Sequence record: PV261925.1
DNA: 64,000 nt
Strand: one strand, 5' to 3'
Positions within the stretch are counted from its first letter, which is position 1; each line of letters opens with the position of its first letter. The notes beneath the pieces were generated by a model. It saw only the letters and a program-made list of their open reading frames with translations, was not told the DNA's origin and did not search any database. This document shows positions 7,025 through 64,000 of this stretch, piece after piece. The position numbers were made by a program, and so were the translations under genes.

Positions 7025-9067
7025 TTAGTAGGATGCTCTGCTAACGATTGCGGTACCAAGTGGTTGTCGGGGAGTTGTGGTCAGAAGTGCCTGTTCTTGT
7101 TCAGGGGTTTCGACAGTAGTAATTGGTGTACCTCTTACTAATGCGTTTGATCCATAACTTGATGAAACAATGTAGTTTGTTCCTGATACATCATTTCCAG
7201 AGGAAATGTTGTCAGCAATAACATCGACTGTTGTATTATTTACATCCAATTGTAGATAGAGATCTTGGAGACCAATCACATCATTAGAGTATGGAGTTGC
7301 CGATACCTCTACCAATGGTGTATTTCTATTTACGATGGTAGAAATGATGTTAATTGGGTTGAGTTTGATTTCTCCCTTCTTGTAATCAATAGTACCTACG
7401 TTCTGTTTTACAATAATTGGTTCAGTAGGTGAATTAAGTTTGAAGAGGAATACCGTACCTTTCTCAAGGTCACCTGTGGGTTTATCACCAAGGTAAACCG
7501 TACCACTAATACCACTGACAGTGAAACCAGATGATTTGATATTGTAACCAACTAGGTTTCCATCGAAGACTGCACTATGACCATGATTCTTCACATGGAA
7601 ACGATTGCCGAAGCATAATTCGTACTCAGCAAACTTATTAGGAGAAGCAACCATATCTCTTCTCATATTCACATTTGTGATGTTAGAAGTTACAGACTGA
7701 TGGCTACTATCAATAACCTTTTGGAACTTGGAATATTTGAAACGAGCACCAAACTGATTAAGTTCTGATGAATCAGCGTAAGCAGTCAAGTTCTGTAATA
7801 CTACATTCTGAACGAATGATGCATTAGGTGCAAGGTTTGTATTGTAGTATGTCTCACAATCTGCTTCAACATACAGATACTTCAGGTCAATGATCTCTGC
7901 TCGAATACCAGCAACTGAGTAACTTTTGATTCTCTGTTGAAGGTTTTGTTTGATTCCACTTGATAAGAAGACACCATTATATGGTTTGACACTGATGAAC
8001 ACCTTACCAAATTGTGGTGGGCTCAGATCCTCACCACCAAATGCTGATACTGATTCAGCTTCTGGGTAGATCTGTGGAATTAATGCTTCATAATCAGCAG
8101 CAGTGACTGCTCTGTTCTGTGATGCGTAAATCTGCGGTGCATACTTCTTAATCGATTCAACAGATTCAATTGATTTACCACCTGTTGATTGTAAGACCGT
8201 TTCAATAATCGATACACCAGAACTAATTCCTGCACCGTTATTATCGTTTAGGTTACCAATAAATTGAAAGTTTGCAATGTTGTTTCCACTAGCTCCATTA
8301 CTTGTGATATAACTTGCTTCAATATAATTCTTATCTTCAAGTTTGACACCAAAGACACCATCACCAAATAGTAATTCATATCTTTCTTGTGAAATCTCTT
8401 GAAGGAAATAAGCTCTGGTTGACTTAGTTACATCAAACAGACTTGTAAACAATTCAAACTGTCTTGTTACAGTTGAACTCTGGGTGTCTCTTACAACGAC
8501 ATTCAAGAGATCAGTATCAATACCTGAGTTAGGAAGAATAAACTTCTGAAGTTTATTACTACCATCTACCGTAAAAGTTTGTTTAATGTATGTTCCTTCG
8601 TAGATATTAATATTTCTAAATGATGCAGTACCAGTTGAATCTACTGGAACAGTAATATCATTTGGAATTGAGAATATAAAATTTCGACTCTTATTGACAC
8701 CAGTTGATCTAGATGTCATGACTGCACCAGCCTTAAGTGTGACTGATACTGCGGTTGTATTACTTACGTCTACATCAAAAGATACTTGGGCGGTTGATGC
8801 TTTTCTTGATCTAGGTACATACCCAATATTCCTCGCGAGAGACACCACGTTCTCCCTCAACGTGGCGCTATCGATGAATACCTCATTAGATACCATATTG
8901 GCATTATATGAGGTGATATACGTATTATATGCTAACGTATCGATGATTGTGCTTAGATTCGATCCTTCAAAGTCGTAATCAGTGAAGTTTGAGTTCGAAC
9001 GAAGATAGTCCTTGATAGACTCTTTGATCTGATCAAAATCTAAGTTGCTAAAATTAACTAGAGGCAT
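7025..9067 (-). CDS. gp6: Baseplate wedge subunit gp6
   Basis: 680 aa; NLDFDQIKESIKDYLRS..FTDYDFEGSNLS..LAYNT..NE.FIDSATLRENVVSLARNIGYVPRS and QNRAVTAADY motifs. Confidence 0.95.
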   Translation of the reverse strand: MPLVNFSNLDFDQIKESIKDYLRSNSNFTDYDFEGSNLSTIIDTLAYNTYITSYNANMVSNEVFIDSATLRENVVSLARNIGYVPRSRKASTAQVSFDVDVSNTTAVSVTLKAGAVMTSRSTGVNKSRNFIFSIPNDITVPVDSTGTASFRNINIYEGTYIKQTFTVDGSNKLQKFILPNSGIDTDLLNVVVRDTQSSTVTRQFELFTSLFDVTKSTRAYFLQEISQERYELLFGDGVFGVKLEDKNYIEASYITSNGASGNNIANFQFIGNLNDNNGAGISSGVSIIETVLQSTGGKSIESVESIKKYAPQIYASQNRAVTAADYEALIPQIYPEAESVSAFGGEDLSPPQFGKVFISVKPYNGVFLSSGIKQNLQQRIKSYSVAGIRAEIIDLKYLYVEADCETYYNTNLAPNASFVQNVVLQNLTAYADSSELNQFGARFKYSKFQKVIDSSHQSVTSNITNVNMRRDMVASPNKFAEYELCFGNRFHVKNHGHSAVFDGNLVGYNIKSSGFTVSGISGTVYLGDKPTGDLEKGTVFLFKLNSPTEPIIVKQNVGTIDYKKGEIKLNPINIISTIVNRNTPLVEVSATPYSNDVIGLQDLYLQLDVNNTTVDVIADNISSGNDVSGTNYIVSSSYGSNALVRGTPITTVETPEQEQALLTTTPRQPLGTAIVSRASY

Positions 9068-11425: not shown

Positions 11426-12205
11426 TCAGATCACCCGAGTCTTCTCATGACCCACTCGAATCCGTGGATCACACCAGATATCATATCCAGCTTCAATTGC
11501 ATCAAGACAGAATGAAACGTCTTCACCACACATATCTTGAACTGCACCACTTTCAAACACTTGCATCTTAGGAGCAAACCAAGGATACTTCATCTTCTCA
11601 TTCTCAAAGACACCATTCTGAATCAGAACCCAACCGAATCCAGTATAGTCAACAGTAAATGGCTTCTTACGCTTACTGATACCATCAACCATCTCATGAT
11701 TCATCACACCACCATTATTCCTGAAGTCATCTTCTTCCAACCAATGCGCAACAGAGGTTGTCCGCCCGTCCTCAGTCGAATACCAACCTGCAACGATTTC
11801 CTTCTCCTCACCTTCAGAGTTTAACGCGAGGTCGCACAGCTGCCAGAACTTCTCAGTGTTAAAAATAATATCAGAGTCAATCCACAACTGATAATCATAA
11901 TTCAACTTACCATCCCAAGGAATCTGGTCAGGCCCTCTCAACACATTGGCGCCGAGACACTTACAACGTGCGAAGTTCACCATAGACGAGTAATCCTGAC
12001 TGATCTGAATACTCATCTGGTTCTGTACAAGATCAAAACATAACTGTACAAAATTCTTCATGAATGCATATGAACATCCACGTCCTGGAAGACAAAAAAC
12101 AATTGCCTTCCCTCTCATCCTCTCTTTGATCGCTTCATAGTCCCACTCAGGACCTTTATCTTTCTTCTTTGGTTCTGAAGCTTTTACTGTAAAACCTTTA
12201 GCCAT
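11426..12205 (-). CDS. GT-A-fold glycosyltransferase-like protein
   Basis: VNFARCKCLG, LWIDSDIIF (DxD), VDYTGFGWVLI and GEDVSFC motifs; likely start MAKGF at 12205. Confidence 0.75.
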   Translation of the reverse strand: MAKGFTVKASEPKKKDKGPEWDYEAIKERMRGKAIVFCLPGRGCSYAFMKNFVQLCFDLVQNQMSIQISQDYSSMVNFARCKCLGANVLRGPDQIPWDGKLNYDYQLWIDSDIIFNTEKFWQLCDLALNSEGEEKEIVAGWYSTEDGRTTSVAHWLEEDDFRNNGGVMNHEMVDGISKRKKPFTVDYTGFGWVLIQNGVFENEKMKYPWFAPKMQVFESGAVQDMCGEDVSFCLDAIEAGYDIWCDPRIRVGHEKTRVI

Positions 12206-12234
12206 GAATTTGAAATCACTCCATTTCAATTTTT

Positions 12235-12263
12235 ATTATACCAAGTATGTAGTCCTCTGTCAA
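12235..12263 (-). promoter_or_regulatory. Consensus sigma70-type early promoter
   Basis: TTGACA-N17-TATAAT. Confidence 0.85.
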
Positions 12264-12285
12264 TCACTGAGGGTATCGGTAAACC

Positions 12286-12498
12286 CTACTGTGACGTGTC
12301 TGACAAATTACTGATATCCACTCCTTCTTGTAGTACATTCACTACCTCATATGAGAGATCCTCAGCTTGATAGTCAGTCTTCACTAGGCCCACCAGGTTC
12401 TTTAAAGTCTCCCAACTACTTCGAAAATTCTCTTCTGACAAACTATGTAATACACACTCGTCCTTTAAGTATATGTGGTAGATCTTTGTAGAACTCAT
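12286..12498 (-). CDS. Hypothetical protein (70 aa)
   Basis: ORF track; typical composition. Confidence 0.7.
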   Translation of the reverse strand: MSSTKIYHIYLKDECVLHSLSEENFRSSWETLKNLVGLVKTDYQAEDLSYEVVNVLQEGVDISNLSDTSQ

Positions 12499-12681
12499 AG
12501 ATGCGCCGACCTTATGACAATTTTTTTATATATGGAATTTTTTTTATATGGGCAATATCTTAAGGCCGTTTGGGGACCTTTGTAGGTTAGGAAAGGCGCA
12601 ATTTCTTTTAAGGGGGGGCTCTTTGCGGGATCCCCGCGGTACTCGAAGGCCCTAAAATACTGTCGAATTTGGCATAGTGTC

Positions 12682-12711
12682 ATTATAACATATAAGGCCA
12701 CAGAGTGTCAA
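12682..12711 (-). promoter_or_regulatory. Consensus sigma70-type promoter within an inverted repeat
   Basis: TTGACA-N18-TATAAT with TGn extension; GGCCACAG/CTGTGGCC inverted repeat flanks the -35 box. Confidence 0.8.
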
Positions 12712-12733
12712 GAACTGTGGCCCTGGTATGTTA

Positions 12734-12985
12734 TCACGCGAAGAGATAAGTTCCGCGGTCGATGCGAGTAACTCCGCGTCCTTCTTTCACAGCTTTCAGG
12801 ATAGCCATTTTAGTCATAAAGTTCCCGCAGCATTCAGTCTGCATCCATGTGTCCCATGCACGGTTGTTGTTATACAGTGCACGCAGAGTAGGATACAACT
12901 CCTGCAGTGTATATGCACCGTTGAGTGATGGGATGATGTCGCGGACCCAATTGCGGATCTCTTTGTTAATTGCTTTGGTTTCCAT
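12734..12985 (-). CDS. Hypothetical protein
   Basis: ORF track 12734-13054; likely start METKAINK at 12985 after an AC-rich leader. Confidence 0.65.
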   Translation of the reverse strand: METKAINKEIRNWVRDIIPSLNGAYTLQELYPTLRALYNNNRAWDTWMQTECCGNFMTKMAILKAVKEGRGVTRIDRGTYLFA

Positions 12986-13071
12986 GTGTTGAGTGTGTGG
13001 TGAGTAGTGTATACAAAGGGGGTTCATATAGGCCCCCTTATATAAGCCCTTCATATAGGGCCCTTATGTGA

Positions 13072-13224
13072 TCAGAACTCAAGCGGTTCGAGTGTAGGTT
13101 GGGCCTGGGGGATTTGCACCTGTTCGATGTTATCACTGTTCGTAGCGATAGCCTCAAGGATGTTCAGGATTTGAGCACCATTGTTACCCTTACGAAGCAG
13201 AGAGATCATCAGATTGCGGGACAT
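13072..13224 (-). CDS. Small hypothetical protein (50 aa)
   Basis: Manual translation MSRNLMISLLRKGNNGAQILNILEAIA...; AC-rich leader. Confidence 0.7.
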   Translation of the reverse strand: MSRNLMISLLRKGNNGAQILNILEAIATNSDNIEQVQIPQAQPTLEPLEF

Positions 13225-14680: not shown

Positions 14681-14810
14681 GAACTTCGGAGTTGTCATCA
14701 ATTACAGTTACAATTTGTCCGTCTTGAGTTAGAATTTCATACTGAGTTTGAAATGATGAAATATCAGCCTTTCCAACAATAATAGCAGTGGTGAGGATAA
14801 ATTCAATCAT
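14673..14810 (-). CDS. Small hypothetical protein with hydrophobic N-terminus (45 aa)
   Basis: MIEFILTTAIIVGKADISSFQTQYEILTQDGQIVTVIDDNSEVHD. Confidence 0.6.
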   Translation of the reverse strand: MIEFILTTAIIVGKADISSFQTQYEILTQDGQIVTVIDDNSEVHD

Positions 14811-17515: not shown

Positions 17516-17626
17516 GTGGCCTTACATTGTATCAAGGTAACCACACCAAAACATGATACAAATGCCACACATTATGGGCCTTACATGAGTGTTGTAACCA
17601 CCACAGAAATTACACTCAATGCCCAT
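17516..17626 (-). ncRNA. Tandem pair of structured hairpins (GUAAG internal-loop scaffold), candidate ncRNA
   Basis: Unit B 17574-17626: ATGGGC-AT-TGAGTGT-19nt-ACACTCA-TGTAAG-GCCCAT. Unit A 17516-17568: GTGGC-AT-TTGTATCA-19nt-TGATACAA-TGTAAG-GCCAC. Stem sequences differ but pairing is kept. Confidence 0.65.
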
Positions 17627-21492: not shown

Positions 21493-21744
21493 TCAGAAGT
21501 CAGGTCCAAGAATTTCCATAAGATCAGCAGGATCAGTACTGCCGAGATAAGTCTCAGTAAAGAGAATTGCTAGTTCTCTACTACCAAACTCAATCTCTAC
21601 ATTATCCCAGATCCTGTCATTATATACTTTGACAGTGATAGGTTGAACACCCGATTCTTCAATTGTTTCAGAAATATTATAATAAATGTCATCACCATCA
21701 CTACAATCAAAGTCATAAGTGACTTTTACAGTTGACATAATCAT
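21493..21744 (-). CDS. Hypothetical acidic protein
   Basis: Likely start MIMSTVKV at 21744. Confidence 0.65.
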   Translation of the reverse strand: MIMSTVKVTYDFDCSDGDDIYYNISETIEESGVQPITVKVYNDRIWDNVEIEFGSRELAILFTETYLGSTDPADLMEILGPDF

Positions 21745-21941
21745 TTTGATTCCTCCAGAGTAATAGTACGATACTGATTGACAATGGTCTCTAGTTCCAT
21801 AACACAATGTTGCATTGTGGCACGAGAGTAACCAGTAGCATAAGGATAACCCTGATCAGGGTTATTCAACGCATCATGTGATACATTCACTCCATCTTGA
21901 AGACTTTCGATGATTGTGATTAGTTTGGTGTCGATGTTCAT
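21741..21941 (-). CDS. Hypothetical protein
   Basis: Likely start MNIDTKL at 21941; GYPYATGYSR motif. Confidence 0.7.
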   Translation of the reverse strand: MNIDTKLITIIESLQDGVNVSHDALNNPDQGYPYATGYSRATMQHCVMELETIVNQYRTITLEESK

Positions 21942-21951
21942 GATAGGTAAT

Positions 21952-21990
21952 AAAAAACCGCTGTAGGGGATCAGAGACACCTTACAGCGG
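21952..21990 (-). terminator. Rho-independent terminator
   Basis: CCGCTGTA...TACAGCGG followed by T6. Confidence 0.75.
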
Positions 21991-21997
21991 AGAATAG

Positions 21998-22207
21998 TCA
22001 GACAGTGGTCTTAGGACCAAACTCACGTTGATAAGAATCTTTCACATACTCAACAGTTTGTTGAATGAAAGGCTTGACATAATCAACGAGTTGTTTTACA
22101 TCTTCAATGAGCTTGTTAGTCTCATACTGATGAATCTCCCAACGTACTTTGATGTCGGCAAGATACTGTTGACGAGTAATAAGAACTTGAGGAGTGGTTT
22201 GAGTCAT
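21998..22207 (-). CDS. Hypothetical protein
   Basis: ORF track; first gene after repeat copy 10. Confidence 0.75.
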   Translation of the reverse strand: MTQTTPQVLITRQQYLADIKVRWEIHQYETNKLIEDVKQLVDYVKPFIQQTVEYVKDSYQREFGPKTTV

Positions 22208-22257
22208 AGAAGTGTGGTCTCTACACTATAGGGGACATTTGGAGGTGAGTAATTCTG

Positions 22258-22461
22258 TCACCTCTTCTTTTTCTTGAGTTTGTTAATCAATGTCATCGCA
22301 GATTGTCTGTTACGACATACTTTAACCACCACACCATTGTGAACAACCACAAGTTTAGTTGTTGAACCAACCAGTGGAATTGCAGCCAGATAACCATCAC
22401 CCACAATGATAGGTAATGTTCCTGGTTTACAATCAAGGATGTGTGAGTTTGTGTAATGCAT
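22258..22461 (-). CDS. Hypothetical protein
   Basis: ORF track; stop abuts repeat copy 10. Confidence 0.7.
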   Translation of the reverse strand: MHYTNSHILDCKPGTLPIIVGDGYLAAIPLVGSTTKLVVVHNGVVVKVCRNRQSAMTLINKLKKKKR

Positions 22462-22915
22462 TTAGATATACTTGGTGGGCTTCTTCAATAGTATCATATA
22501 TCCCCAAATATTCAGTTTTACCTTCATGTGCAATACGAGAGTAATATCTACCACTATGTGCGGTCGATACACCTCTGACACCTAATTCATTATTGTTTCT
22601 TACTTTAGTATTGTAATTATTCTGTGTTTGGTCAACTGCTCGTAAGTTTTCTATTCTGTTATTACTTTTGTTTCTATCAATATGGTCTATTTGTTGTTCC
22701 TGCTCTAAGTCACCATAATGATACTGATACACCAATCTGTGCTTTAAATATATCTTCTTATCCACAGATATTTGATAATATCCAGTGTGATGTTTAGTCC
22801 CTGCAATAGAACCTGCAGGTTGTCTTCCCCTACATTTTTTGTAGATAAGTTCACCATCTTGGTAGGCGAAAAGTTCCTGTAACCTACCCTGTGAAGGGAG
22901 TTGATAATTTCTCAT
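22433..22915 (-). CDS. HNH homing endonuclease with C-terminal AP2 DNA-binding domain
   Basis: YLKHRLVY...IDHIDRNKSNNRIENLR (HNH_3) and GVRGVS..GRYYSRI..YLGIYDTIEEA (AP2). Confidence 0.9.
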   Translation of the reverse strand: MRNYQLPSQGRLQELFAYQDGELIYKKCRGRQPAGSIAGTKHHTGYYQISVDKKIYLKHRLVYQYHYGDLEQEQQIDHIDRNKSNNRIENLRAVDQTQNNYNTKVRNNNELGVRGVSTAHSGRYYSRIAHEGKTEYLGIYDTIEEAHQVYLNALHKLTHP

Positions 22916-23010
22916 GTGTGTCTTGGCGATGACATTACTATTTAGAATTTTATCATAATGTGGGACTTACGTCAATTTACCCGCCAAGACACACTGACTG
23001 CCCACATTAT
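22916..23010 (-). promoter_or_regulatory. Structured leader (GUAAG scaffold hairpin E1 + late promoter + loop-complementary RBS region) of the HNH gene
   Basis: ATAATGTGGG/CCCACATTAT stem; GTCA/TGAC inner stem; loop GTGTGTCTTGGCG (22982-22994) is the exact complement of the 13 nt before the ATG (22916-22928); TAAATA at 22939-22944. Confidence 0.75.
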
Positions 23011-24188
23011 TATTTACGAGTTACACTGTCAAGCATTTCTCCCTTCTCAAACACAATATCAACACAACGCTGGAGAGACTTTTGAGTGGAAAGTCCTACC
23101 TGATTGTAGACAGGGACGCAGAGCATACCGTAGGTTTTAGTAGAAGAACCAACCCTAATGACACGTCCGACAGTTTGAAGAAGCTCAATACTGTCCATGT
23201 TACGAAGGAAGATAACCGCCTCAAGTTCAGACACGTTGATGCCTTCAGACAGAATAGAACGGTGAAGGACAACAAATTTCTTTGACTTGTCACGACCCCA
23301 TGCATTCAGAGTATTGAAAAACTCTTCACGAGATACTTTCTGACCATCGATAACAGCACCAGTCTTGGCGGTGATATACAGATAAGAGTAACCACGTTCT
23401 GTCAACTGATCAGCGAAATCAGTCATGAACAGGTTCTGTAACTGTCGTGTGGTCTTAACACAAACCAGAATCTTCTTGATGTCAATCTGGTCAATAGATG
23501 CGAGGACATTGTTACCCTCAAGATGAGGAGTGAGAGACTTTTTGTCAATCTTATCCATCTCAATCACCTTGACCTTAGGTGGAAGAATGTAACCATTCTG
23601 AACCAGATCAGGTGCAGACACACGTGCAATCACTTGACCATAAGTCTCAGTCCAGTTCATGCCTGGTTTCTTCACAGTCACACTGGTTTTACGAGTTGCA
23701 GTGAAGTAGTAACAACGATCTGCATGCTTACTGAAATACTCAGTGGGACCGTAGAAGTTACGTTGAACAGAGTTATGTGCCTCGTCAAAGTAAATCGTAT
23801 CTACAGCAATACCAGACTCTTGAACACGATGAAGAGAGTGATATGTGGTGAAGATAATAACGTGTTCACGCATAGTGTGACACATATCAACAAATAGTTT
23901 GATACGTTCAGACTTAGTGGTACTGAAATGTTGTGTCTCTCCACTATGAACATGGAGAACATTTGCATTGGTGATATGTTCCAGATACTCTGATGACAGT
24001 TGTTCTGCCAACAGAATACGAGGAGCGACAACAACAATAGTGCGAGGAACTTTTATCTCAAATCGTCTCACTGCGTCCATGATAGCGATAAGAGTCTTGC
24101 CGCCACCAGTAGGAACAATGATTTGACCGATAGAATTATTACGAAGAGCGTAAACAGCGTCCTGTTGATGAGGGCGGAGTTTGATCAT
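23010..24188 (-). CDS. Superfamily 2 (DEAH-type) helicase
   Basis: LRPHQ, PTGGGKT (motif I), DEAH (II), TAT (III), LSEGINV (V), QTVGRVIR (VI). Confidence 0.92.
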   Translation of the reverse strand: MIKLRPHQQDAVYALRNNSIGQIIVPTGGGKTLIAIMDAVRRFEIKVPRTIVVVAPRILLAEQLSSEYLEHITNANVLHVHSGETQHFSTTKSERIKLFVDMCHTMREHVIIFTTYHSLHRVQESGIAVDTIYFDEAHNSVQRNFYGPTEYFSKHADRCYYFTATRKTSVTVKKPGMNWTETYGQVIARVSAPDLVQNGYILPPKVKVIEMDKIDKKSLTPHLEGNNVLASIDQIDIKKILVCVKTTRQLQNLFMTDFADQLTERGYSYLYITAKTGAVIDGQKVSREEFFNTLNAWGRDKSKKFVVLHRSILSEGINVSELEAVIFLRNMDSIELLQTVGRVIRVGSSTKTYGMLCVPVYNQVGLSTQKSLQRCVDIVFEKGEMLDSVTRK

Positions 24189-24231
24189 TTATGTGGTGTA
24201 TGTAATAGTGTGGACGTTTGGAGGTGAGTAA

Positions 24232-25113
24232 TTATGAACCGTATCCATTATGGAAGTTAGCATATGCAAACTCGGTACGATCTACCAGTTTAACACATCC
24301 ATAGGTGTTAGAGTGGAAAACATATCCTTCACCACTACATTTCTTACCATTAGGAAGATAAGATTGTGGTGCGTCGGTGACAATCAGACTGTCCATAATA
24401 TCCAGTTTGATTTCCATCACAAACTGATACAGATTAGTGAGATGTTGACAACCAAGAATGTCAGTCAGGGTTGCGTCATCAATATACTGACCAGATTTGA
24501 TGAGTGCGTTGATAGCAGTCTTAGCCTTAGCAGCTTCCTTATCAGTCAGAAACTTGATACCCTTAGGGTTAATCTTAGGGACAGATCCTTGGGGAGGAAT
24601 ACGATCAACAGAAGGTTGCACCCACTTGACCATAGTGGTGTCTTCAAATGTTTCCATCAAAGGTGAACACACATTCTTCCACATTTCCTCGTGAACGTCA
24701 ACAGCTGTGTGAGGAGCGATGACAAGTTTCTGGTCAATTGCTTCGTCAAAGACATACGTCAGAGTGTTCTGAGTAAACACATCAGTACGACCGAAACCAA
24801 GCCAATCACCCCAGTAAATCTTCTCGGTACGAGGAAGATACTTGAAACAATGAGACAGAATATCTACAACTTCGATTTGATGACCAAAATGAGTGAAGAT
24901 GTCGTCAATAGAGTAACAAAGACGAACTTTCTTCTTGTTAAATGCAGCTTTTGTACACACAAAAAACTTACCATTGGCAGGGTTAGTACCCCAAACCAAC
25001 GACATTCCATCCATCTTCATAGAGATGTGTGCGTGATCATAAAGAAGATCAAACACTGACATATCTCCAGTCAAAATGCAGTCTTCGGGATGTTCCAGGT
25101 GAGTTTGTGTCAT
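24232..25113 (-). CDS. Hypothetical protein with ligase-like covalent nucleotidyltransferase motifs
   Basis: SMKMDG (KxDG), EGYVF and VKLVDR in the expected order; THLEHPED N-terminus. Confidence 0.6.
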   Translation of the reverse strand: MTQTHLEHPEDCILTGDMSVFDLLYDHAHISMKMDGMSLVWGTNPANGKFFVCTKAAFNKKKVRLCYSIDDIFTHFGHQIEVVDILSHCFKYLPRTEKIYWGDWLGFGRTDVFTQNTLTYVFDEAIDQKLVIAPHTAVDVHEEMWKNVCSPLMETFEDTTMVKWVQPSVDRIPPQGSVPKINPKGIKFLTDKEAAKAKTAINALIKSGQYIDDATLTDILGCQHLTNLYQFVMEIKLDIMDSLIVTDAPQSYLPNGKKCSGEGYVFHSNTYGCVKLVDRTEFAYANFHNGYGS

Positions 25114-25164: not shown

Positions 25165-25617
25165 TCAGATCACATGTATGCTCTCTATATGTGACACTGG
25201 TGAAGATTTACAGTAGAACTGTATATTTTTGTTGTATTTGGTTCTTCTTACAATTCTCTTCAATGCGTTGTAGTCGGTGTCATTATCTCTGGCCCATTTA
25301 GATAATTGATGACATTCAACCACATCACCGTTTCTAAACCTAATTCTATATGTCTTTGCATTAGGGTTGTTATTCAACCCTTGTTCTACAAACTGTTTCT
25401 TATCTGTAAAAACATTGATACGTCCTAACACCCAACCGTCAGGTATTTCGTCTTCAAATACCATCTTATGTTCAAGTCCGTTATTTACCCATACAGACCC
25501 ACGAACATACGACACACGGGCGTCATACACAGGTGTTAGTTCTTCTTCAGTCAGTGTAATTACTGACGGTCCATCACATTCAAACGCGCGATTAAGACCT
25601 TCACAGTTCCAGTCCAT
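25165..25617 (-). CDS. Homing-endonuclease-derived DNA-binding protein, no evident catalytic domain
   Basis: WVNNG..HK..IPDGWVLGR and NPNAKTYRI..LSKWARDN resemble endonuclease C-terminal DNA-binding modules; no GIY-YIG or HNH motif seen. Confidence 0.6.
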   Translation of the reverse strand: MDWNCEGLNRAFECDGPSVITLTEEELTPVYDARVSYVRGSVWVNNGLEHKMVFEDEIPDGWVLGRINVFTDKKQFVEQGLNNNPNAKTYRIRFRNGDVVECHQLSKWARDNDTDYNALKRIVRRTKYNKNIQFYCKSSPVSHIESIHVI

Positions 25618-25625
25618 TCTTCTAT

Positions 25626-25705
25626 TGACAGGGGTAATTATATTTATACCATAAAATGGGTCTTACGTCAACCTAACACCCCTGCCATGTTGACCGCCCA
25701 ATATT
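25626..25705 (-). promoter_or_regulatory. Structured leader (GUAAG scaffold hairpin E2 + late promoter TATAAATA)
   Basis: TGGG-CG-GTCAAC-16nt-GTTGAC-GTAAGA-CCCA; loop TGGCAGGGGT pairs with ACCCCTGTCA (25626-25635); TATAAATA at 25641-25648. Confidence 0.75.
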
Positions 25706-25865
25706 ATTGAACAGGAGTTTGTCTTGAAACTCGTTTGATTACATCTTTGGTAATCTCCTGTTTCATTTCTTCCTTTTCTCTTTCCTGTTCTTTCTTGTCT
25801 CTTTCAGCATCGATCTTAGCCTGAGCCTGTTGTGCCTTTGACTGAAATTGATTGTAGTTATTCAT
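25704..25865 (-). CDS. Small coiled-coil protein (53 aa)
   Basis: MNNYNQFQSKAQQAQAKIDAERDKKEQEREKEEMKQEITKDVIKRVSRQTPVQ. Confidence 0.65.
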   Translation of the reverse strand: MNNYNQFQSKAQQAQAKIDAERDKKEQEREKEEMKQEITKDVIKRVSRQTPVQ

Positions 25866-63777: not shown

Positions 63778-63862
63778 TAGGAACGGGGAGACTTGAACTC
63801 CCACGGACATAATGCCCAACTGATTTTAAGTCAGGTGCGTCTACCGATTCCGCCACGCTCCC
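63778..63862 (-). tRNA. trnL: tRNA-Leu, anticodon UAA
   Basis: GGGAGCG/CGTTCCT acceptor stem, TGGCGGAATCGGTAGACG D-arm, CTTAAAA anticodon loop, long variable arm, GTTCAAGTC T-loop; CCA not encoded. Confidence 0.95.
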
Positions 63863-63868
63863 AAAAAA

Positions 63869-64000
63869 TCAGGTAATAGGATTACCCAGTTTATCGTAGG
63901 TTGGTGGATTTAGACGACAATACTCATTAAATGTGATTTTCATCTCTTTGTACGTCAGACCACAATTATTTGCTGCTTCTGGTAAATTCCATTTTGCGGA
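63869..64000 (-). CDS. C-terminal part of a hypothetical protein
   Basis: AKWNLPEAANNCGLTYKEMKITFNEYCRLNPPTYDKLGNPIT*. Confidence 0.65.
   Translation of the reverse strand, partial: SAKWNLPEAANNCGLTYKEMKITFNEYCRLNPPTYDKLGNPIT

Follow-up and report, generated by a model that had tools for sequence, protein, structure and literature searches.

Here we describe a repeated RNA module at the start of an HNH homing-endonuclease gene in a 64,000-nucleotide stretch of sequence record PV261925.1, which we refer to as the window. The record is that of Synechococcus phage RB11-B, a 210-kb T4-like cyanomyovirus isolated on Synechococcus sp. MW02, with S-B05, S-B43, and RN05-S as close relatives; positions 21500-24500 of the window are 100% identical to it, and window coordinates are obtained by subtracting 146127 from record coordinates. 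The leader of the endonuclease gene is complementary to the apex of a conserved hairpin encoded just upstream, and there is little doubt that this RNA pairing is real and selected. We propose, with a probability of roughly 60%, that the pairing masks the gene translationally on transcripts that read through from the gene upstream, and that both promoters carried by the cassette give mRNA that is not masked. Masking of read-through RNA, combined with unmasked promoters of its own, would let the module serve as an expression insulator that moves together with the endonuclease gene.

The minus strand carries nearly all genes of the window, and the module and the genes around it lie on that strand. 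The HNH reading frame begins with the ATG at 22915-22913. The last bases of its leader, -13 to -1, directly against this ATG (CGCCAAGACACAC, 22916-22928; the 3' arm), form a 13/13 inverted repeat with a segment 53 nucleotides (nt) away (GUGUGUCUUGGCG, 22982-22994; the 5' arm). An initial annotation of this DNA had reported the match together with an extension over the AUG past a single bulge, and both can be read in the sequence: beyond one bulged A, A22995 pairs with U22914, C22996 with G22913, and U22997 with A22912, an extension that is also part of the minimum free energy (MFE) fold. This is the sole perfect inverted repeat of at least 13 nt with a loop of at most 100 nt in the window. Dinucleotide shuffles of the window contain a mean of 0.2 such repeats, and at least one is found in 14 of 100 shuffles, so that the length of the repeat is by itself only mildly unusual; its significance comes from its position directly against the ATG and from its conservation.

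When the hairpin segment (22961-23004) is folded alone, it forms three stems: S1, in which UGGG (23004-23001) pairs with CCCA (22964-22961); S2, in which GUCAGU (22998-22993) pairs with AUUGAC (22976-22971); and S3, in which UGUCU (22991-22987) pairs with GGGUA (22982-22978). The tetraloop is UGGC (22986-22983), and a conserved internal loop, GUAAGU (22970-22965), lies on the 3' side. The 5' arm had initially been placed in an open loop; instead, it is made up of the 5' strand of S3, the tetraloop, and one or two flanking bases, which in this copy are one base of S2 and the first base of the 3' strand of S3. There is also a local 13-nt inverted repeat (92%) between 22952-22964 and 23001-23013.

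The hairpin, the promoters, and the leader belong to a module of ~105 nt that is present in two full copies in the window, copy 1 before the HNH gene (22907-23017) and copy 2 at 25609-25713. One 16-mer taken from the 3' half of the hairpin recurs exactly in 21 IMG/VR contigs and nearly exactly at 25656-25671 in the window, and with two looser patterns run over IMG/VR we arrived at ~30 distinct true instances, so the description of the scaffold as conserved was correct. The comparative set consists of a narrow clade plus unannotated virome contigs, and start codons are ambiguous in a few of the variants (L130, L166). A covariance model, R1, built from 25 instances, scores copy 1 at 93.1 bits (E=1e-20) and copy 2 at 95.3 bits (E=3e-21) and finds no further copy in the other 146 kb of RB11-B. 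Copy 1 is identical or nearly so in L005-L011, L015, and L016. A blastn search of 50,697 phage records with either module returned only RB11-B and S-B05; all other instances come from IMG/VR contigs. The module has no match in Rfam at E<=10 (22300-23300 searched), and at gathering scores the only Rfam match in the whole window is a tRNA. Literature searches yielded no account of the module. A number of loci returned by the pattern scans (L100, L102-L104, L118, L120, L122, L124, L126, and L128) are chance matches in unrelated sequence without the other features of the module; L133, L136, L138, L139, L142-L145, and most of L146-L168 are likewise chance matches that lack them.

Copy 2 has its hairpin at 25700-25657, its 5' arm, UGGCAGGGGUG, at 25687-25677, its 3' arm, UACCCCUGUCA, at 25636-25626, and its ATG at 25617. 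Its arm pair is unlike that of copy 1 and forms a duplex of -19.7 kcal/mol. Between the arms there is a -35 hexamer TTGACG at 25671-25666 and a perfect TATAAATA at 25648-25641. The 150-amino-acid reading frame behind it (25165-25617; phrog_10820, E=9e-7) has weak similarity to only the C-terminal part of an HNH-endonuclease family. Both copy 2 and this reading frame are missing from RN05-S, relative to which both window copies sit at insertions, and S-B05 joins the same module to a different, unrelated 163-amino-acid reading frame. Overall, the genes behind modules encode HNH-AP2 endonucleases, GIY-YIG endonucleases (phrog_314), other HNH types (phrog_3106), and small proteins that match only the C-terminal parts of endonucleases.

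The hairpin alone folds into S1, S2, S3, and the tetraloop in 23 of 23 variants tested. The family consensus has (U)GGG/CCC(A) as S1, GUCAAN/NUUGAC as S2, a weak S3 of 4-5 pairs, and UGGC or GGGG as the tetraloop; the sixth pair of S2 may be G-C, C-G, U-A, or U.G. The internal loop is 2 x 6, with a conserved 3' side of (G/A)UAAG plus one variable base. We ruled out a K-turn at this loop by inspection, as it has no tandem G.A/A.G arrangement. Elsewhere in the window, at 17520-17625 on the minus strand, two tandem hairpins have the same shape, with a GGGC/GCCC-type basal stem, a 3' internal loop of UGUAAG, and a stem of 7-9 base pairs (bp) whose sequence is entirely unlike that of the scaffold; a -35 box is absent, and neither hairpin is obviously complementary to the leader that follows. 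These may be promoter-less relatives of the scaffold, or terminators, and the fact that they keep the UGUAAG loop suggests that the GUAAG loop matters in its own right.

Complementarity between the hairpin apex and the leader, 7-14 bp in length, is found in every true module but one (L151). There are two classes of arm pairs, unrelated to one another in sequence: ...GUCUUGGCG.../...CGCCAAGAC... and ...GC(A/G)GGGG.../...CCCC(U/C)GC.... The duplex of a loop with its own leader averages -22.5 kcal/mol, compared to about -9 kcal/mol for shuffled leaders, and in 25 of 28 variants none of 200 shuffles reaches the observed value. In alignments specific to each class, the loop-leader helix is paired in 96% (A5) and 88% (A6) of cases, with two and five pairs, respectively, changed on both sides; if the partner is slid by 1-3 columns, pairing falls to 30-50%. 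Examples of such double changes are GUGUC/GACAC versus GAGUC/GACUC, CAGGGG/CCCCUG versus CGGGGG/CCCCCG, and UGCGGGGG/CCCCCGCA versus UGUGGGGG/CCCCCACA (L123). One more, UUGGCGG/CCGCCAA in L130 versus UUGCCGG/CCGGCAA in L135, affects tetraloop bases that pair only with the leader. In addition, G.U wobbles occur in the sense orientation only, in L111, where an A-to-G change gives U.G, and in copy 2, which has two G.U pairs. Since these would be A.C mismatches on the opposite strand, the constraint acts on the sense RNA. As comparative evidence, the independent double changes and the retention of pairing in two arm classes are a stronger argument than the shuffle statistics.

These observations bear on the simplest account of the module, namely that it is a promoter and a recombination linker and nothing else. 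T4-like phages contain PeSLs (promoter-early stem-loops), cassettes of a conserved stem-loop and a sigma70 promoter that flank variable reading frames and through which these are exchanged (PMC2839356, PMC4122927; Arbiol et al. 2010, Comeau et al. 2014). The module could be a pure PeSL whose complementarity has no regulatory role and arose, for example, as a by-product of duplication of the 3' strand of S3. The same module is indeed joined to different reading frames at or near the ATG, and its promoter elements account for part of the conservation. What makes this account very improbable is the compensatory change, independent in L130 and L135, in tetraloop bases whose only partner is the leader, the upkeep of complementarity in two unrelated arm classes and in almost every variant, and the presence of wobble-compatible changes, which point to RNA pairing.

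The bases of S3 that pair with the leader also covary with their partners within the hairpin. In the GGGG class (A6), five of the five S3 pairs are changed on both sides, with for example A-U in 8 variants versus G-C in 6 and C-G in 12 versus U-A in 2. Pairing holds in 88% of cells, and the 5' columns of S3 covary both with their partners in the stem and with the leader. In the other arm class, the U in column 31 becomes A together with both of its partners. Because S3 and the leader helix share bases and both covary, they are alternatives to one another, and the apex is a switch rather than a pseudoknot. Thus two mutually exclusive pairings both appear, from the alignments, to be under selection. 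The initial annotation had left the choice between a loop-to-leader pseudoknot and a switch; the switch stands, and the apical pseudoknot is set aside.

Predicted energies favor the leader-paired state in both window copies. The leader-paired conformer of copy 1 is predicted at -31.5 kcal/mol versus -25.8 kcal/mol when the hairpin is enforced, and the values for copy 2 are -29.9 and -24.4 kcal/mol, a difference of ~5.5 kcal/mol in stability. The long-range helix is contained in the MFE structure of the 151-nt read-through RNA (z = -2.6), and a helix of 13-14 bp up to the AUG is present in both the MFE and the centroid folds. In the 55-nt RNA from the gene's own promoter, in contrast, the start region is predicted to be open. 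We computed accessibility as the predicted mean unpaired probability from -18 to +12, for a long RNA starting upstream of the hairpin and a short RNA starting at the predicted late start. Over 24 variants accessibility is 0.38 in the long RNA versus 0.65 in the short one, and 22 of the 24 show the lower value in the long RNA; for the HNH copy, the values are 0.35 and 0.82.

Two promoters, assigned by their motifs, lie between the arms. The sigma70-like promoter (22947-22975) has a -35 hexamer TTGACG (22975-22970) formed by the 3' strand of S2, a 17-nt spacer, and a TG-extended -10 hexamer TAAAAT (22952-22947), with the ATG ~30-35 nt beyond the -10. Variants read TTGAC(G/A), 17 nt (18 in one lineage), and TGnTAtAAt, often with a perfect TATAAT or TTGACA, and the site resembles the best sigma70-type sites of the phage, at 12263 and 12711. 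The second signal, the late-type box CTAAATA (22939-22945), lies 24 nt upstream of the ATG and substantiates, at the level of the motif, the late promoter that had been noted between the arms. CTAAATA occurs only four times in the window against 11 expected by chance, and each of the four precedes a start by 17-36 nt on the coding strand. The shorter TAAATA occurs 38 times on the coding strand versus 8 on the other, and 23 of these sites are found 17-49 nt before annotated starts, for the most part those of tail-fibre and baseplate genes. The late-type box of the module is either CTAAATA or, where it is merged with the -10, TATAAATA, in which case the two signals coincide; the late consensus of cyanomyoviruses is NATAAATA, and overlapping early and late promoters are thought to give rise to the 'middle' class (PMC2984593). 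From the predicted late start to the AUG there would be only 14-21 nt of leader, most of it 3' arm.

We also noted several sequences related to the late-type box. Late genes of the phage share an upstream (A/C)TAAATA followed by ACTAAA, 17-20 nt before the start, as at many tail-fibre genes (e.g. 33467, 36795, 38097, 39470, 45699, and 47247). In several variants of the module a (C)TAAATA-like motif, or a stop codon plus ATAATAT, is found just 5' of the hairpin. On the minus strand there is a 12/13 direct repeat, TAAATAATAATGT / TAAATAGTAATGT, between the junction of the helicase stop with the insert (23004-23016) and the late-promoter region (22932-22944). The repeat at the junction may represent another late box, located upstream of the hairpin, or an operator or homing-site mimic like that of I-TevI, or else a trace of recombination.

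A signal in the DNA, such as a cruciform or a binding site for the endonuclease that mimics an operator or homing site, would be another source of conservation. There is precedent, in that I-TevI binds an operator overlapping its own late promoter (PMC2988022), and the 12/13 direct repeat (23016-23004 versus 22944-22932) would be in keeping with it. Against this, the G.U pairs of L111 and copy 2 would read as A.C mismatches on the complementary strand, 45-55 bp separate the arms, and the two classes have entirely different arm sequences despite the related reading frames behind them. The wobble pairs above all render a DNA-level role unlikely, and we regard it as improbable in the extreme.

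The two promoters also determine what kind of switch the module could be. The initial annotation had argued for a gene that is silent on early read-through RNA and expressed late. Its first half, masking on the long RNA, agrees with the predictions; its second half, the contrast of early and late, cannot be taken for granted, since a sigma70-like promoter also lies between the arms and the contrast is therefore one of read-through versus own-promoter transcripts, not necessarily of early versus late. A strict temporal switch of the I-TevI type would require that the gene be silent on early read-through RNA and translated only from late transcripts made at CTAAATA, with the sigma70-like site unused or shut off. 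The late-type box has the geometry of the late promoters in the window, I-TevI, gene e, and mobE are precedents, and the translation initiation region (TIR) is predicted to be masked in the long RNA. However, conservation of the -35, the 17-nt spacer, and the TG-extended -10 matches or exceeds that of the late box, and these elements are near consensus in many variants, and in TATAAATA variants early and late signals coincide, as in the overlapping promoters of cyanomyoviruses. The strict late-only version is less likely because an early-type promoter between the arms is so well conserved, and on balance we consider it unlikely.

We therefore favor a model in which the contrast is set by the origin of the transcript. 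The HNH gene would have arrived within a homing cassette whose 5' ~105 nt are a portable regulatory module of the PeSL type. On read-through RNA from the helicase gene upstream, the rod-like hairpin (S1, S2, S3, and the tetraloop) would form first. The leader would emerge ~50 nt later, nucleate on the four tetraloop bases, and displace the weak 3' strand of S3 and, in copy 1, part of S2 as well. The resulting helix of 8-14 bp would bury the leader, in copy 1 running up to and over the AUG, and the endonuclease would be poorly translated from read-through mRNA. Transcripts from the sigma70-like and late-type promoters, which lie between the arms, would begin beyond the 5' arm and leave the start region open, so that expression of the endonuclease would depend on the promoters of the cassette, whatever operon had been invaded. 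How the promoters are used, where transcription starts, in which order the RNA folds, how translation is affected, and whether the hairpin terminates transcription are all inferred; what the analysis gives directly are the sequence elements with their conservation, the covariation of both pairings, the presence or absence of the cassette and the swapping of its reading frames, and the predicted energies and accessibilities.

Several observations weigh against this model. First, the HNH leader has no Shine-Dalgarno sequence to sequester; the masked element would be the start-proximal leader with the AUG, not a classical ribosome-binding site. Second, the 3' arm of GGGG-class variants, copy 2 among them, spans roughly -22 to -12 and leaves the AUG uncovered. 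Third, the gain in accessibility is small in copy 2 (0.48 versus 0.53) and there is none in L127 (0.57 versus 0.55). Fourth, if the sigma70-like promoter is active early, the gene would be expressed early anyway, and the benefit of masking would then be only one of dosage or insulation. Fifth, the covarying sequences come from few related lineages, so that the shuffle controls overstate significance. Sixth, L151 contains half a module (14723-14785), with an intact hairpin and TATAAATA, no complementary leader, and no start of a reading frame within 70 nt; this is probably a remnant of recombination. Lastly, the module is present in 2 copies per 210-kb genome, unlike the dozens of PeSLs in the dense arrays of RB49. 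Units that pair a hairpin with a promoter but have another sequence do occur in the window, for example at 12690-12735.

The hairpin itself could instead be the functional unit, serving mainly as a terminator or 3'-end structure of the upstream mRNA whose released RNA acts in trans as an antisense RNA, pairing by its tetraloop with endonuclease mRNAs from the cassette promoters, or as stacked helices that form a processing site and so part the upstream mRNA from the downstream one. Several variants have the rod-like hairpin and tetraloop followed by a U-rich 3' flank (CCCAUUUUAU in copy 2), PeSL stem-loops have been shown to terminate, the GUAAG internal loop and G-rich tetraloop bases seem to resemble the recognition loops of antisense RNAs, and scaffold-like hairpins without promoters occur at 17520-17625. 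But the U tract is weak or absent in copy 1 (CCCACAUUAUGA), L130, and L135, and a scan for consensus terminators flagged neither window copy. A 13-bp duplex is short for RNase III, and cis pairing is kinetically favored over trans. Taken together, this makes a terminator, trans-acting, or processing role a poor prospect. A bolder and equally doubtful idea is that the hairpin is a natural programmable riboregulator scaffold that works both in cis and in trans, with the tetraloop as a toehold, RNAs ending after the hairpin titrating the endonuclease mRNAs made from the gene's own promoters, and the GUAAG loop as a site of protein or tertiary contacts. If this were true, the more the invaded operon is transcribed, the less endonuclease would be made.

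The module is one of several solutions within this genome, since three other RB11-B endonuclease genes that we inspected outside the window (L169:25112-25197, L169:36882-36927, and L171:7384-7474) have other upstream arrangements: a sigma70-like site alone; TATAAATA with a small hairpin adjacent to the AUG; and, after gp23 (the major capsid gene), a GC-rich classical terminator followed by TATAAATA.

The HNH gene (22433-22915) encodes a protein of 160 amino acids with matches to Pfam HNH_3 (E=4e-17, 61.9 bits, cut-off 24.8), phrog_99 (E=1e-54), and I-HmuI (E=0.005). The initial annotation had called it an HNH-AP2 endonuclease. The HNH part is secure; for the AP2 part, the C-terminal 50 residues have an AP2-like pattern (RGV...G.Y.ARI...YLG.Y.T.EEA..AY) and residues 113-150 match the AP2 domain of WRI1 marginally (E=0.057), and there is no match to Pfam AP2 at E<=1. 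A metagenome scan with an alignment of the HNH protein gained only three close relatives; the remaining 77 loci, with distant HNH genes in other settings, were left out of the analysis.

Upstream of the HNH gene lies a helicase-like gene (ResIII/DEAD/Helicase_C by Pfam; 23010-24188), the source of the read-through transcripts considered here; its stop codon, TAA at 23012-23010, is followed by a 94-nt spacer and the HNH ATG. Downstream, the 3' end of the HNH gene overlaps a reading frame of 67 amino acids (22258-22461) that starts inside it and has a recoded N-terminus, MHYTNSH versus MFTNSH. In RN05-S and S-B43 the site is empty: the helicase stop overlaps the ATG of the next small reading frame (TAATG), and there is no HNH gene, spacer, or module. 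In RB11-B, S-B05, and six IMG/VR contigs (L005-L010), it is occupied by the HNH gene and its leader; at these occupied sites the last helicase codons are recoded and the start of the small reading frame is re-created within the 3' end of the HNH gene. Over its final ~60 nt (23010-23070), the helicase gene departs from the empty allele mostly through synonymous changes, e.g. AGT GTA versus TCA GTT. The recoding at 22433-22461 and 23010-23070 is consistent with co-conversion or with self-immunity of the target site. Exact presence or absence at one junction together with recoded flanks is the usual signature of a free-standing homing-endonuclease cassette, which is how we regard the HNH gene and its 95-nt leader, with putative homing activity. 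At the same helicase junction, contig L096, 83% identical to RB11-B over 9 kb, has a 221-amino-acid GIY-YIG gene with a variant of the module (7897-8664). The site between the helicase and the small reading frame therefore exists in three states: empty, HNH, and GIY-YIG.

Two further observations concern other parts of the window. At 12205-13072 on the minus strand, 870 bp have no annotated gene and contain the two consensus sigma70-type promoters at 12711 and 12263, one of which is embedded in a GGCCACAG/CUGUGGCC hairpin that forms a PeSL-like unit with another sequence; the stretch also holds GC-rich repeats that form hairpins, near 13040-13075, and two apparent unannotated small reading frames. 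In addition, the record annotates a tRNA-Leu of 223 nt (63778-64000) that runs up to the genome end. Of this, Rfam supports a tRNA over 85 nt only (63778-63862), so the annotated gene appears to be over-extended.

Free-standing homing endonucleases must be expressed without harm to the operon they invade, a problem that T4 solves case by case with start-masking hairpins. Our comparisons suggest that, in a marine cyanophage clade, masking has been turned into something portable, with unrelated endonuclease genes (HNH, GIY-YIG, and remnants) using one scaffold with a co-evolving arm pair. If confirmed, this would link PeSL-type mobile promoter cassettes to translational masking, and the module would be a compact natural switch with unusually clean three-way covariation and a candidate for a new family of cis-regulatory RNAs. 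It would also aid the annotation of expression signals and mobile cassettes in cyanophage genomes and viromes and offer a simple design for context-independent expression.

The closest functional relatives of the module are the masked genes of T4. In e, soc, 49, I-TevI, I-TevII, I-TevIII, and segB, the start region is sequestered by an upstream segment, with a promoter between or within the arms (PMC2988022, PMC3014915). Where the same two papers treat mobE of Aeromonas phage Aeh1, they describe a start-region-masking hairpin of the same class. The analogy to I-TevI that was drawn initially is apt. As in the T4 class, an upstream segment of the module is predicted to pair with the TIR on long transcripts and a promoter is placed so as to give transcripts without the 5' arm, as judged here from predictions and sequence comparison; and as in that class, which includes both free-standing and intron-encoded enzymes, it serves homing endonucleases of T4-like phages. 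Unlike the T4 class, the module draws its 5' arm from the apical stem and tetraloop of a conserved hairpin with three stems and two covarying alternative pairings, a sigma70-like promoter lies between the arms in addition to the late box, and there is no Shine-Dalgarno sequence. The module also differs in being conserved in sequence and reused, in cyanophage, by three or more families of endonucleases, with arms that co-evolve as pairs.

The scaffold, for its part, fits the PeSL concept, so that part of its conservation reflects promoter and perhaps terminator function. Like a PeSL, it is a ~100-bp intergenic element whose stem-loop overlaps or adjoins a sigma70-like promoter and which extends up to the start codon, and it sits at indels or replacements of reading frames between close relatives, bringing its own expression signals. 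A study of cyanophage S-PM2 looked for PeSLs and judged PeSL-mediated acquisition unlikely for its region (PMC4503421). In contrast to PeSLs, which are attached to ORFans, the module adds a late box and is attached mainly to homing-endonuclease genes. Complementarity between loop and leader falls outside the description of PeSLs; the words 'complementary', 'sequester', and 'translation' are absent from PMC2839356.

The protein resembles I-HmuI and the HNH-AP2 endonucleases in its HNH_3 core and its C-terminus of AP2 pattern, a marginal match, and its gene, too, is free-standing, with presence varying at one fixed intergenic site. Synthetic cis-repressed and toehold riboregulators hold a start region in a helix, use a short single-stranded loop to nucleate strand exchange, and combine programmable arms with a fixed scaffold. 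By analogy, the module would share this logic, with the difference that it would be de-repressed by promoter choice, which truncates the 5' arm, and not by a trigger RNA. The principle of masking is itself known from I-TevI and gene e of T4; what is new here is its combination with a mobile cassette like a PeSL.

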